A DNA stretch of 64,000 bases. Source: Bugula neritina (lineage: Eukaryota > Animalia > Bryozoa). The notes under the pieces were generated by a model. It made no database searches and was not told the DNA's origin. It saw only the letters and a program-made list of their open reading frames with translations. This document shows positions 692 to 62,143 of the stretch, in pieces (position 1 is the first letter of the stretch; each line of letters begins with the position of its first letter). Made by a program: the position numbers and the translations under genes. The stretch lies in the NCBI GenBank assembly GCA_964035545.1, contig OZ037767.1, forward strand, positions 7,698,581 through 7,762,580, read 5' to 3'.

Positions 692-767
692 CTTGAGCAG
701 TGCTGACTGAAAGACATACTGAGTAAATAACAATCAGCAACCAGAATCTTTCTACACCAACCTTCAT
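692..767 (-). CDS. Exon 1 (signal peptide) of receptor paralog C; remainder lies off the left edge
   Basis: [25 protein letters not shown] then phase-1 GTAATG donor; 76 bp like exon 1 of copies A and B; flanks 1-1430 are homologous to 60700-62140 and 39835-40940. Confidence 0.85.
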
Positions 768-1883
768 TCTCCCATCTGTACTCTGTTAACATTCAGTGTA
801 AAATAAACTAACAGAGAAAGAAGAAGGAAGTTAATCTGTAAAAACATTTACGTAAGTAAATCTATTTATTACATTCCTACATAATAAAGGGGGTGTTGTA
901 TTTAACCATTGTTACAAAGCAAGAATATCTTTAAATAGCTAAAAGGTTTTTGAATGCACTAAGCTCATTCGTTCATTTACTACTCAATTGTATGAGTCGC
1001 CTGTATTAAATAAATACAATCTTCACAATTCTATACAATCACTTTCTCTTTTATTTCTAAACTTGCTTTCTTTTATAATGCATGCAAGCTTAGTAACTCA
1101 AGCATAATATGTGTCAACTAACTAAAACAAGTTTTTGTAGCTATAGTGTTGTTTCACATGAAATAGAGTCTACAACAGTAGAATCTAAACTAACTATTGA
1201 TTTCCAGGATTCACCAATACCATATATTTACCCAAATACTCTAATTCATGACTGCTGAGTGAAGTTATTCTGTTTTTTTCAAAAGTACACTGATGTTTAG
1301 AGTATTAAAAAAACTTCTTGGCATCTCATTACTACAGTAGCTCTAGTAAAAATAGTTTTGAAATGCCTCAACATTAAACGCACAAAACACCAATGACCTC
1401 ATTGACCCCAATAAAGTTCCTGTTTATGCTTGCATGGGGGACATTACTCATCTACCTTGCACTGATTGTTAAATCTGTGGTTGTCAGAGTGGTTTGGGTG
1501 ACTAGCCCATATTTTTGCCCCACAATTTCCGCCAACGTTGATGTGGTGAGGTGATGCAGTAAATGTTCAAATATACTAAAAACTAAATGAAACCATATAA
1601 CAGTATGTGAACACATGTTAACAAAACTAATAGCAGTGTCATTTTGTTTTTGCTGTTACGGCGTAAGATACGGTAAGTGTGAATGAGGGGTGAGTGTGCC
1701 CAGGGGTGCTACCGCAATCAATTAAAACTAATTAGTTTTGTACAATAATATACAAGCTCAATAAAAAATTCTAAGGAACGTCTCACTTGCAAATAATTTT
1801 CTATTTGACATATATTTTCATGCGGCTAACCAAACGCAAAAGTTTGTTGACATTATGAATTGATATGTTCTCTGAGGAAGAGA

Positions 1884-1928
1884 TGTGTGTGCGTGTGTGT
1901 GTGTGTGTGCGTGTACATGTGTGCGTGT
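1884..1928. repeat. (TG)n microsatellite
   Basis: Imperfect TG/CG run; shorter counterpart near 41345-41372. Confidence 0.8.
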
Positions 1929-59500: not shown

Positions 59501-61483
59501 AGTTCTGCAAATGCTTGCGATATGTAGTGTTTTTATTCTTTGCCACTTTGGGAATAGAAACCTTGTACAGCTATGCAAAATTTTAGATTTCGAATATTTG
59601 AAAACAGCTATTTTGATATAATTTGATTCATTGAGTTAGATTATCATCTGCAATCAGAATGGTTCACTGAGAGCTTGTTGAATAACTAAAGCTTTACTCA
59701 CATTATCATAGCTGTGTTAGCAACATTATATTTTTTTCTATACAATGATTCTTGCTACTACAAAATATTTGACGTTTCAGACTGCTATATAAATCTAGCA
59801 GTTTCTGCTGTTTATTCACCTATATGACTTCTCTCTTTTTTTTTAATCTGCGATGATCAACAGACATCTATATATTAAAAACGCATCAGCTTACAAATGT
59901 TATACTAAGCCTTTAATACATATTTTGTTTAAACCTAATTATTTGCTCAACATAATATTCACACCTTGGTATTAAAATATCCAGTTTCTGACACAGTTGA
60001 TCACATGATAGAATCTACCAATTGCACAACTTACAGTCCTGTTCATACACTTCTACTTCAGCCAATGAAAGAGGTTCGGTGTGGATGCTGTATATAGCCA
60101 CATGTCTAACAAGAACATCAGATTCTAATATCACAGTGGCTTCAGCTAAATATGGTTTGTCTCTGTATGATCTGATCATCCAGTCACTGTTCTTGGCTAG
60201 AGTCGGCTCGCCAGGGTCATCTTCGGCAGATGTGAGGATGTGAACCTTCTGAAGCCTGTGACCTAAAGTTATGAAAATGATCACATAACACTTGTGTATA
60301 ATATGCGTAAAGGGTAAAAAAAGCATCATTTGGCAAAATTGGGATTTCTGCAACACACAACTTGTTACCTCAACAGATTAAACTAAAATTTGCTTTGATG
60401 AAAATCACACAGTAGTAACATAATATACTTTCTTGATATACTTATATACATACACTGGTGGCAGTTATTATCCTGTCTGTTCCATATATTGATCCTGCTG
60501 ACATGAAACTTCTCTTCCAAATCTACCATCCACCATTTCTCAACAGGCACACTTAAAGTGTGAGTGAAATCATCAATTTTTCCATTAACCGCATTTTTTG
60601 CCTCATACAGCCAATACATGTTTGATTGAAAACATGGTTTGTTAAGAGCTAAATTGTCTACAAATAGATATTTTTAGTAACTAATTCTAATCAGAAATTA
60701 TTCCATATAATGCACCATTATTTTATTGAAGCCATCTATAGAATGTTTGAGGAGACAATCCTTTTATACAAAAACTTATATCTGAACGTGCAACAAGCTA
60801 ATTTTCATTCTGCTGTGGTAAGTAGTATATAAGGAAACAAATAAGGCACAATAATTAATGCTATTAATTGTATTACTAGAATAACAGTGAGATCTGCTAA
60901 AAATTAGATGCGCAGCAGTTTATCGTCAACATGCAGTAGCTTCTATGACTTTTTTATTAAAAAATTGCTGGAAGCAATCTATAAAGTATAGTTTAATATA
61001 GTCTCTATAAGGTTGAAAATTGACATAGTTAAGAATCGAAGAATTTGTACTCAATTTGATAGAATGCTTAGTGATGCTACCTGCGATACACATTTTTAAA
61101 TAAAATATGTCGTGAACAAAACAATTGCGATTTCTGTCTTGAACATAACATTTTCAACTTGAATATGAATTTTTTTTAAAAAAACATACTTGTTTTTATA
61201 GTCATAAAGTCATAAAATATTTGAAAAAGTTAGTAGCGACTCAATTGGTATTTTGTATGTACTGACACTGGTGCAACCACTCATCAGTATTTAACAAACT
61301 ACAGCCTAACTGACTCGTTTATTACACTTAAATAACTACACATAATTTGATAATGGAGCACGCAATTATGAAAATAAATGCCTAAAAAACACTATACCAT
61401 GCATTACCTTGAGCAGTGCTGACTGAAAGACATACTGAGTACATCACAATCAGCAACCAGAGTCTTTTTACACAAACCTTCAT
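43339..61483 (-). CDS. Receptor paralog B: SP-3xF-type lectin-3xFN3-RPTP-like juxtamembrane domain-sushi-TM-ITIM tail, ~1103 aa
   Basis: 18 exons with GT-AG and compatible phases: 61483-61408, 60657-60454, 60262-60035, 57290-57066, 55769-55542, 54337-54110, 52077-51841, 51267-51120, 50972-50785, 50281-50184, 50038-49840, 49642-49536, 49310-49118, 48210-48117, 47667-47382, 44530-44479, 44227-44024, 43655-43339 (3312 nt). Confidence 0.85.
44717..44893 (+). mobile_element. 5' fragment of CACAG-MITE family
   Basis: CACAGGATAGTTAAGAGCATCCTC start; paralog of 11118-11285. Confidence 0.8.
45007..46415 (+). mobile_element. Truncated Gypsy LTR, PBS and gag (uninterrupted paralog of 11396-16870)
   Basis: LTR ~45007-45838, PBS at 45840, gag ORF from 45891. 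Confidence 0.75.
47382..48210 (-). CDS. Paralog B RPTP-like membrane-proximal domain with furin site
   Basis: [30 protein letters not shown]. Confidence 0.75.
48671..48860 (+). mobile_element. tRNA-derived SINE (paralog of 19673)
   Basis: A/B boxes at the same intron position as in A. Confidence 0.65.
49118..51267 (-). CDS. Paralog B three FN3 domains (equivalents of A FN3-1, -4, -5)
   Basis: Six open exons homologous to A exons 8, 9 and 14-17. Confidence 0.8.
51841..54337 (-). CDS. Paralog B F-type lectin domain 3
   Basis: Exons 54337-54110 and 52077-51841. Confidence 0.85.
52255..53181. mobile_element. MITE with ~100-bp imperfect TIRs and internal ~21-bp minisatellite
   Basis: 52255-52356 is an inverted match to 53076-53181; CTCTCATACCCTTATT-like repeats at 52330-52580; absent from A. 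Confidence 0.65.
55542..57290 (-). CDS. Paralog B F-type lectin domain 2
   Basis: Exons 57290-57066 (3 codons shorter than A) and 55769-55542. Confidence 0.88.
57850..58495 (-). mobile_element. Internally deleted Tc1-like element
   Basis: ~150-bp inverted arms; internal minus-strand remnant NLW..KPTTIK.LIE and [19 protein letters not shown]-stop resembling the Tc1 transposase C-terminus. Confidence 0.65.
58495..58746. repeat. (TA)n microsatellite
   Basis: ~250 bp TA run. Confidence 0.95.
60035..60657 (-). CDS. Paralog B F-type lectin domain 1
   Basis: Same exon sizes (204, 228) as copy A; FTP signature. Confidence 0.88.
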
Positions 61484-62143
61484 TCTCCCATCTGTACTCT
61501 ACTAACATTCAGTGTAAAATAAACTAACAGAGAAAGAAGAAGAAGGAAGTTAGTCTGCAAAAAAATTTACGCAAGTAAATCTATTCATTACATTCCTACA
61601 TAATAAAGGGGGTCTTGTATTTAACCATTGTTACAAAGCAAGAATATGTTTAAATAGCTAAAAGGTTTTTGAATGCACTAAGCTCATTCATTCTTTTACT
61701 ACTCAATTGTATGAGTCGCCTGTATTAAATAAATACAATCTTCACAATTCTATACAATCACTTTTTCGATTATTTCTAAACTTGCTTTCTGTAATGAAGC
61801 TTAGTAACTCAAGCATAACATGTGTCAACTAACTAAAACAAATTTTTGTAGCTAGTGTTGTTTTACATGAAAAAGAGTCTACAACAGTAGAATCTAAACT
61901 AACTATTTATTTCCAGGATTCACCAATACCATATATTTACCCAAATACTCTAATTTATGACTACTGAGTAAAGTCATCATGTTTTTTTGAAGAGTACAGT
62001 GATGTTTAGAGTATTAAACAAACTTCTTGACATTTCATTACTAGTAGCTCTAGTAAAAATAGATTTTAATTGCCCCAACAGTAAACACAAAAACCACCAA
62101 TGACCTCATTGACCCCAATAAAGTCCCTGTTTATGCCTTGCAA

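Follow-up and report, generated by a model that had tools for sequence, protein, structure and literature searches.

The stretch of DNA analysed here, called the window in its full length, comprises 64,000 nt of the bryozoan Bugula neritina (C3:7698581-7762580, where C3 is contig OZ037767.1 of the 216-Mb, 321-contig assembly GCA_964035545.1), and it contains two complete genes, A and B, plus exon 1 of a third, Z. A and B encode a signal peptide, three F-type lectin domains, five (A) or three (B) FN3 domains, an Fn3_PTPRU domain, a mini exon, a sushi (CCP) domain, a transmembrane (TM) segment and an 80-aa tail with tyrosine motifs. Judged by their exon content, the window genes are phosphatase-less derivatives of neighbouring genes for receptor-type protein tyrosine phosphatases (RPTPs) and are not RPTPs themselves, because they have the ectodomain and the mini exon in common with these neighbours (R1-R3) but no PTP exon is present in the window. 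We consider it somewhat probable that they are members of a lineage-specific tandem family of type-I membrane glycoproteins that act as paired receptors together with the lectin-headed RPTPs.

The anatomy of the window genes is secure. All coding potential of receptor genes is on the minus strand, to which all exon positions below refer, and comparison of the window with itself reveals a tandem repeat, in which positions 4-2228 match 39874-41669 and 60701-62142, and positions 8122-32465 match 41675-57303, at 72-99% identity. ATGs are located exactly at 767 (Z), 40295 (A) and 61483 (B), and each starts a 76-nt signal-peptide exon (692..767, 40220..40295 and 61408..61483, respectively) followed by GTAATG; position 692 is the final base of gene Z exon 1. 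Gene B (43339..61483) consists of 18 GT-AG exons with a coding sequence of 3312 nt for 1103 aa, and gene A (9784..40295) of 22 exons with a coding sequence of 3885 nt for 1294 aa, both being free of internal stops. Gene Z, of which only exon 1 is inside the window, is intact in the left flank, and its remainder occupies C3:7672655-7699347. An earlier reading made from the letters of the window (the sequence-only reading) had described head-to-tail copies with these three start codons, two of them intact, stalks with three or five FN3 domains, and the domain order from signal peptide to tyrosine tail. Its positions are exact, the FN3 numbers are correct for B and A, the third copy proves to be intact as well, and the architecture is borne out by exon-wise matches to Pfam, PDB and profiles.

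Gene models were constructed from stop-to-stop open reading frames (ORFs) and alignments of seven paralogues, i.e., R1, R2 and five tail-type genes, and the paralogues were taken from 200 kb of DNA flanking the window. Automatic splice-pair scoring assigned wrong sites for several introns, and multi-paralogue alignments were used instead; all splice acceptors and donors are conserved in 7/7 paralogues, and exon lengths differ only by multiples of 3. Introns are mostly of phase 1, and each lectin and FN3 domain is divided between two exons. Queries of databases and structures were made exon by exon, and joined proteins were used only for frame checks, alignment, the ratio of nonsynonymous to synonymous rates (dN/dS) and motif counts.

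The three lectin domains are encoded by exons 2-7. Lectin 1 is formed by 60454..60657, with the His and the NRQD of the sugar motif, and 60035..60262 in B, and by 39588..39791 and 39169..39396 in A. Lectin 2 is formed in B by 57066..57290, which has His, NRQG and hypervariable loops equivalent to complementarity-determining regions (CDR) 1 and 2, and by 55542..55769, which has a variable late loop; its counterparts in A are 32219..32452, where the CDR1-like loop has an insertion of 9 nt, and 28243..28470. Lectin 3 is formed by 54110..54337, with Asn instead of His, and 51841..52077 in B, and by 26857..27084 and 25744..25980 in A. The first exon of each of the three domains matches PF22633/PF00754 in Pfam (E 8e-8 to 3e-6), and first-half exons match F-type lectins in PDB, i.e., bass FBP32 (3.3e-7), S. 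mitis Sm-hPAF, pneumococcal SpX-1 and eel AAA, with the sugar-binding His aligned; second-half exons alone gave no match in Pfam or PDB. When joined, the domains are 144-155 aa long and show the similarity expected of the F-type lectin domain (FTLD) family, to which we assign them on these matches.

In the stalk of gene B, FN3 a is encoded by exons 8 (51120..51267) and 9 (50785..50972), FN3 d by exons 10 (50184..50281) and 11 (49840..50038), and FN3 e by exons 12 (49536..49642) and 13 (49118..49310). Gene A has FN3 a in exons 8-9 (24604..25090, i.e., 24943-25090 and 24604-24791) and FN3 d and e at 20122..21294 (21200-21294, 20862-21060, 20562-20668 and 20122-20314), and its four extra exons at 21574..23570 (FNb1 23482-23570, FNb2 22453-22657, FNc1 21834-21937, FNc2 21574-21742) supply two FN3 domains that have no counterpart in B. 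Pfam matches to fn3 are weak (E 0.002-0.05) because each FN3 is divided between two exons, and the sole PDB match of an FN3 exon was a fibronectin FN3 domain at E 0.41. The membrane-proximal FN3 is Fn3_PTPRU of Pfam (PF23144, E 1.8e-8 and 1.1e-7), and it is encoded by exons 14 (48117..48210) and 15 (47382..47667) in B and by two exons at 17880..19205 (19112-19205 and 17880-18165) in A. Exon 15 of B contains the furin-type site RKTRSKR and a 12-residue motif, and A has the furin-type site RSKR; the PTPRU exon aligns with the fourth FN3 of RPTP-mu, including the basic cleavage-site region (PDB 8a16, E 0.0016). RSKR is present in 5/6 paralogues having Fn3_PTPRU (R1, Z, A, B and D), and gene C has lost it (RIKG). 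A HMMER protein search with the PTPRU exon gave only 16 matches, with no full-length annotated homologue among them, and three of the matches were set aside as unrelated bacterial repeat proteins.

The mini exon that follows (44479..44530 in B; 10818..10869 in A, 17 residues) is common to the RPTP paralogues, and after it come the sushi exon (44024..44227 in B; 10365..10568 in A) and the last exon (43339..43655 in B; 9784..10100 in A), which encodes the TM segment, the tail and the stop. As a single sequence, the sushi exon reached only E 0.04 in Pfam; a profile of nine copies matched modules of CR1, Crry, DAF and CR2 in PDB at E 5e-21 to 1e-5 (for the CR1/DAF set, the upper value is 1e-7), and C5, C32, C47, W57 and C64 are invariant in 9/9 copies, as in a sushi/CCP domain. 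A single-sequence AlphaFold model of this exon had a mean predicted local distance difference test score of 56.7 and was not used, the PDB profile search taking its place. Gene B has one TM segment (about residues 1001-1027, KD19 2.55) between the ectodomain, which carries 14 N-glycosylation sequons, and the 80-residue tail. No match to the Ig family, and hence no V-set domain of the Siglec kind, was found on the exons scanned in Pfam (14 of B's 18 exon positions).

The origin of this layout was clarified by a six-frame genome search for PTP domains, which located PTP exons on both sides of the window and on the same strand. When the window exons are projected on the stretch, the genes are ordered R1, then Z, A, B and C, then R2, then D, and then R3, within 264 kb. 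Up to and including the 52-nt mini exon, R1 is built like the window genes, with their signal peptide, three lectin domains, the PTPRU domain and, in its case, five FN3 domains. Beyond that exon, R1 has a TM exon unlike theirs, which is followed by a juxtamembrane region (AEYENV), a first PTP domain (D1) with WPD and HC-SAGVGRTG, and a second one (D2). R1, R2 and R3 each possess a full set of TM, juxtamembrane, D1 and D2 exons including WPD and HC-SAGVGRTG, the 3' exon set of R3 being the same as that of R1. R2 (C3:7809836-7810383) is like R1 but without the two Fn3_PTPRU exons and the mini exon; its TM exon is found less than 400 bp after the last FN3 exon, and the phases are still compatible. 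In the window, there is no PF00102 match and no homologue of the TM, juxtamembrane, D1 or D2 exons of R1, and the tail exon ends in a conserved stop; where an RPTP gene has its 3' exons, past the common 52-nt mini exon, a window gene has a sushi exon and a TM/tail exon instead. The sequence-only reading had named continuation into a downstream phosphatase domain as an outcome that would overturn it; the window genes do not continue in this manner, but their nearest paralogues R1-R3 do. Elsewhere on C3, a divergent tail exon with a stop is followed 6 kb downstream by a lone PTP-like exon with one TAG (C3:7908575-7908700, 7914909-7915217), which is either a relic of an RPTP-to-tail transition or an unrelated fragment.

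Ectodomain exons common to the RPTP and tail-type genes have 76-100% nucleotide identity, the per-exon range being 81-100% among the genes of the 264-kb stretch, and the nearest relative switches from exon to exon, giving a mosaic pattern. Exons 1-2 of A are 99-100% identical to R2 (99% for exon 2), and in exons 16-17 A agrees with B at 98-99% identity. A block of 11.1 kb containing the 3' half of B and downstream DNA (41000..52084) is 98.7% identical to gene D (C3:7833331-7844411), and nucleotide differences between B and D amount to 6-12% in their 5' halves; we attribute this block to a recent conversion or segmental duplication. The mosaic comparison shows two interleaved gene types that evidently are still swapping sequence by gene conversion. 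Related ectodomains with different signalling modules are in this way placed side by side, which is the arrangement characteristic of paired receptors.

The sequence-only reading had proposed counting copies in the flanking DNA, and the count shows that the array extends far beyond the window. In genome-wide searches, all relatives were found on C3, at 7.10-8.14 Mb, and nowhere else in the 216-Mb genome; those at C3:7.88-8.15 Mb and 7.10 Mb are known by match coordinates and 3-kb loci. The family counts are 19 lectin-1-type exons, 11 close PTPRU exons, 9 good sushi exons with 2 decayed ones, and 10 full tail exons with 2 truncated ones; there are at least eight sushi and tail genes, and PTP-type 3' ends number at least five. 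The close subfamily and a more divergent plus-strand subfamily at 8.04-8.14 Mb each contain both gene types. Behind two plus-strand tail-type genes (C3:8067515-8068085 and 8095075-8095633), we noticed a decayed sushi exon with 3 stops and a truncated TM/tail exon; such decayed sushi/tail pairs are remnants of duplication of the 3' module. Homologues are present in independent data: a contig of another B. neritina assembly (GCA_010799875.2) has lectin 3, FN3, PTPRU, TM and PTP exons, and two JGI Bugula-associated metagenome contigs have PTPRU, sushi and a tail 79% identical to that of B with all four Tyr motifs. A protein word-index search with the tail gave one match, the JGI Bugula homologue, and the family is so far restricted to Bugula-like bryozoans.

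The F-type motif consists of His, then R-x-D-x4-(R/K), plus a cation motif h-h-D-G-x, and some FTLDs deviate from this canonical form (PMC5712786). In the Bugula family, lectin 1 has His, R-Q-D-x7-R with x7 spacing, a short CDR2 and the cation motif AVNGK (N for D). Lectin 2 has R-Q-G/S-x3-4-R with canonical spacing, a full-length CDR2, Gly/Ser for the acidic residue and the cation motif GVDGV. Lectin 3 has Asn for His, R-D-D-x9-R and the cation motif AIDGK, and its first Arg is changed to Gln in Z and A. The His...Arg...Arg triad, which serves in binding of fucose O4, is kept in lectin 1 and lectin 2 of 7/7 genes. Judged on these residues, lectin 2 plausibly binds fucose, lectin 1 may possibly do so, and lectin 3 is unlikely to.

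To place the loops, we counted from the cation motif and the His, following the AAA numbering of PMC5712786. In lectin 2, the indel-rich, hypervariable CDR1-equivalent loop has 16 replacement and 0 silent changes (p 0.003), and for the equivalent loop of lectin 1 the counts are 10 and 0 (p 0.03); two late loops were also tested, and this post hoc choice is to be discounted. Positive selection over whole domains is rejected, because pairwise Nei-Gojobori dN/dS is 0.32-0.63 in every domain; with dS of 0.11-0.23, these values mark the copies as apparently young genes under constraint rather than in decay. Sliding windows gave pN/pS of 0.12-0.24 for the tyrosine motifs of the tail and of more than 1 for some segments of lectin 2 and lectin 3, and the comparisons taken together support the view that diversification would be concentrated in the lectin loops.

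The tail of B contains SAYEVP, QPTYIN, VNYEVL and HVYAAV. Although tails are 38-92% identical overall, Y71, Y84 and Y99 are invariant in 10/10 of them, in the conserved contexts QP.Y[IM]N..F.KE, ..YE[VIP][LM]Q and the C-terminal D.VY[AT].[VI].N, and a fourth, membrane-proximal Tyr is present in 8/10. Y71 forms a YxN (Grb2-type) motif. Y84 fits the pattern (I/V/L/S)xYxx(I/V/L) of the immunoreceptor tyrosine-based inhibitory motif (ITIM) in 7/10 tails, the misfits being ESYEVL and, twice, VSYEVM, and it is found as VNYEVL/VTYEIL in 5/5 close copies and in the JGI Bugula homologue. Y84 and Y99 together constitute a pair YxxL/M-x10-11-YxxV/I, in which the spacing and both tyrosines are invariant, with variants such as YEVL-x11-YAAV, YEVL-x10-YAEV and YEVM-x10-YARI and with V at +3 of the second motif in 8/10 tails; this spacing is equally like that of the immunoreceptor tyrosine-based activation motif (ITAM), YxxL/I-x6-12-YxxL/I. 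Candidate partners are encoded in the genome: an SHP-like gene with two SH2 and PTP exons at C3:23.740-23.748 Mb, and a Syk-like gene with two SH2 and a tyrosine kinase at C7:14.371-14.378 Mb, which was recognised from adjacent exon matches.

Under the paired-receptor reading, the lectin head would bind a fucose-like glycan, with lectin 2 as the best candidate, and clustering of the receptor would lead to phosphorylation of the three invariant tail tyrosines. The YxN would then dock a Grb2-type adaptor, and the YxxL-x10-11-YxxV/I pair would dock a tandem-SH2 protein, which may be an SHP-type phosphatase or a Syk-type kinase. Recognition of the same or a similar ligand would in this manner have two outputs, through an intrinsic phosphatase in some receptors and through a tail that docks via phosphotyrosine in the others. 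For the narrower statement that the window genes encode a glycan-sensing, SH2-docking partner of the lectin-headed phosphatases, which is reasoned from the motifs above, we estimate the chances to be about even.

Several points weigh against this reading. The canonical motif H..RxDx4(R/K) is complete in none of the three lectin domains, and the F-type jelly-roll fold of the head is putative. Membership in the lectin family stands, because some FTLDs deviate from the motif, and fucose binding is putative; the "fucose-sensing" of the sequence-only reading is thus retained for its F-type lectin heads, which are real, and not for the sugar. The tests of variable loops are partly post hoc, and they are approximate because paralogues are non-independent through gene conversion. 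The tail motifs are short, and at the rate seen among ectodomain tyrosines, 14-18% of tails with four Tyr would match ITIM by chance; the evidence is therefore the conservation and not the pattern match. Y84 and Y99 also fit YxxPhi sorting signals, and the "ITIM tail" claimed earlier, while resting on a conserved Y84, becomes one of several readings of the same residues. A search of sequencing runs found one DNA run matching the locus and no RNA run. It is from the gene structure alone that we infer the "paired" function, and for the sign of the predicted tail signal, inhibitory, activating, endocytic and adhesion readings all stand.

The inhibitory reading takes the tail as an ITIM that recruits an SHP-type phosphatase, and the genes as Siglec-like inhibitory fucose sensors at a self/non-self or allorecognition locus of a colonial animal. 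This is rather unlikely in our estimation: the VNYEVL/VTYEIL fits of the close copies and the Bugula neritina homologue, the SHP-like gene, the clustered, fast-duplicating and gene-converting family with variable lectin loops, and the colonial habit of bryozoans are in its favour, but the ITIM pattern fails in 3/10 tails though the tyrosine is invariant, the chance rate of a match is appreciable, and dN/dS is below 1 across whole domains. In addition, the ITIM is single, and its distance of 15 residues to the next Tyr fits ITAM spacing, typical pairs of ITIM and immunoreceptor tyrosine-based switch motif (ITSM) having Tyr-Tyr distances of more than 15 residues. The genes are not Siglecs, as they have no Ig V-set domain, and the earlier term "Siglec-like" survives as an analogy only. 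To our knowledge, no allorecognition genes are known in bryozoans, and the B. neritina genome paper mentions only weak Alr1-like similarities (PMC7576161). That the cluster of about 1 Mb is a new kind of paired-receptor system, with a rapidly diversifying triple-lectin head that gene conversion would keep partly in register, for the colony's discrimination of self, kin, microbes or symbiont, in its strongest form a bryozoan histocompatibility locus, we regard as unlikely, and an allorecognition role is speculation.

When the same tyrosine pair is read as an ITAM-like motif recruiting a Syk/Shark-type kinase, the tail forms become activating partners, and the same-headed RPTPs would oppose or gate their signal. 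Invertebrate ITAM receptors such as Draper exist, all 10 tails keep both tyrosines and the 10-11-residue spacing, C7 offers a candidate tyrosine kinase with tandem SH2, and pairing with an intrinsic phosphatase form makes opposite wiring plausible; nevertheless, the +3 residue of the second motif is V/I rather than L/I in most members and that of the first is M in two, acidic residues are missing from the classical upstream positions, and the Syk-like gene is known only from adjacent exon matches, so that this reading also has a rather low probability. Multi-lectin-domain endocytic receptors with tyrosine-based motifs are well known, and if YEVL and YAAV were YxxPhi sorting signals for AP-2, the proteins might be endocytic or phagocytic lectin receptors for uptake of fucosylated particles, microbes or symbionts. 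Two invariant tyrosines fit YxxPhi, Bugula hosts vertically transmitted bacterial symbionts, and the JGI homologue came from Bugula-associated metagenomes. We consider this proposal clearly unlikely, since YxxPhi is common and fits 19-21% of ectodomain tyrosines, the invariant YxN and the conserved surroundings of the tyrosines (QP.Y, D.VY) exceed the needs of AP-2, and origin from a signalling RPTP suggests a signalling role. The view that the proteins are adhesion or morphogenesis molecules, whose ectodomain would act in cell-cell or cell-matrix adhesion like those of R2B RPTPs or Drosophila Furrowed, or decoys in which phosphatase-less copies are dominant-negative competitors of the RPTPs for ligand, can refer to the membrane-proximal FN3 and furin site, which match R2B adhesion phosphatases, to ectodomains near-identical to those of the RPTPs, and to Furrowed, an FTLD-CCP-TM adhesion protein (PMC5712786). 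It is quite improbable, because a pure decoy would not need a strongly constrained tail with three invariant tyrosines, and the excess of replacements in lectin loops and the approximately 19 members suit recognition of variable ligands better than a housekeeping role in adhesion. Decaying pseudogenes or an artefact of collapsed or duplicated haplotypes are suggested by the missing RNA match, the 11-kb block shared by B and D at 98.7% and the degenerate sushi/tail pseudo-exons elsewhere in the cluster. This explanation, which the sequence-only reading had itself named as a danger, is very improbable: five tail-type and two RPTP-type genes have each retained 13-22 open exons and have every splice site intact, dN/dS is below 1, copies differ by 8-25% and have different transposon insertions, and homologues exist in independent Bugula data.

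The R2B RPTPs (PTPRM/K/T/U) are among the closest known systems. Like these, the Bugula family has a stalk of FN3 domains and, next to the membrane, an FN3 with a basic furin-type site and FT.GD..YNGY.N, and its paralogues R1-R3 continue into TM, juxtamembrane region and two PTP domains. They differ in the head, which is composed of three F-type lectin domains in Bugula and of MAM-Ig in R2B, and in the window genes having no PTP but a sushi domain, a different TM and a tyrosine-motif tail after the mini exon. Among domains that accompany FTLDs, i.e., CTL, pentraxin, CCP, TM and FA58C, CCP and TM are frequent, and a phosphatase has 0 occurrences (Vasta et al. 2017, PMC5712786). The sequence-only reading did not recognise this combination from any named family, and we likewise found no named family with this architecture and, in a limited search of the literature, no description of a lectin-headed RPTP or a matching receptor. 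Drosophila Furrowed (FTLD-CTLD-CCPn-TM) is similar in joining an F-type lectin, CCP and TM, and it is different in that the Bugula genes have expanded in tandem and encode only one CCP, a conserved phosphotyrosine-type tail and an FN3/RPTP stalk topped by three FTLDs in a row. Secreted F-type lectins, such as eel AAA, bass MsaFBP32 and oyster bindin, resemble the Bugula domains in FTLD sequence and in being split by introns, and in eel and oyster isoforms the variation is likewise concentrated in CDR1/CDR2-type loops (PMC5712786). The Bugula proteins differ from them in that they are predicted to be membrane-anchored and signalling, and in having the canonical fucose motif incomplete in every domain.

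With paired immune receptors (Siglec, KIR, Ly49, SIRP and PILR), the Bugula genes share a head that is a lectin or recognition module, an ITIM-fitting tail Tyr in most copies, and a clustered, fast-duplicating arrangement in which near-identical ectodomains are joined to different signalling parts and the two kinds undergo gene conversion. Unlike those receptors, they have no Ig domain and no homology to them, and the counterpart form is an intrinsic phosphatase rather than a DAP12-coupled form with a charged TM. Hydractinia Alr1/2 and Botryllus fester are similar in belonging to colonial animals and in being clustered type-I membrane families with tail tyrosine motifs, and in fester, too, a sushi domain is present; in sequence, the Bugula family is unrelated to them. 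If the paired-receptor reading is true, lophotrochozoans would possess paired receptors built from parts unrelated to vertebrate immune receptors, and the logic of "same head, different wiring" seen in the KIR, Ly49 and Siglec families would have been invented independently. An F-type-lectin-headed receptor tyrosine phosphatase, an architecture we have not found described, is documented here, and for recognition through glycans in bryozoans, be it of kin, microbes or symbionts, the family supplies specific candidate genes; we know of no recognition genes in this phylum.

The assembly represents a single haplotype, and the contigs of the DNA run mentioned above do not separate paralogues from alleles. 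Two further runs from this organism, of unknown library type, gave contigs that are 90-95% like transposons and parts of the sushi and PTPRU exons (window 44000-44399 and 47400-47799), and they cover neither introns nor the tail exon, where the depth is zero. One explanation is low-coverage DNA, from which only multi-copy sequence would assemble, and another is RNA of paralogues.

The window also contains several mobile elements. The DNA that separates the 5' end of Z from the 3' end of A contains, on the plus strand at 2752-7850, a pol of the long-terminal-repeat (LTR) retrotransposon type, with its frame broken into several ORFs and with the domains RVT_1 (4775-5377), RT_RNaseH (5381-6070) and rve (6926-7207). 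Retroelement integrase fragments are present on the minus strand at 33397-36519 (rve 35331-35972), in intron 3 of A, and at 62142-64000 (Integrase_H2C2 and rve 63086-64000), between genes B and C; these are recent copies of one element, because 3951-4710 matches 34156-33397 at 98% in inverted orientation. The intron of A between the mini exon and the PTPRU exon contains, at 11930-16092, a transposon that is absent from B, and we classify it as Harbinger/PIF-like because inverted terminal repeats of 1.08 kb (11930-13007 and 16092-15014, 96.5% identical) enclose HTH_Tnp_4 and DDE_Tnp_4 ORFs (14254-14974). Within the same intron of both A and B, a plus-strand ORF of about 200 aa without a Pfam match (16427-17020 and 45867-46469) is found in a repeat, of which 16091-18256 matches 45633-47758 at 91%; this repeat is a multi-copy element, because its contig depth is very high in all three runs. 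Intron 3 of A and that of B have a long microsatellite of (TA/TATATA)n type in equivalent positions (32449-32766 and 58478-58746). Outside C3, small contigs of the assembly (e.g., C33, C37, C44, C66 and C176) have many intronless protein-kinase matches that run through numerous TAA/TAG codons.

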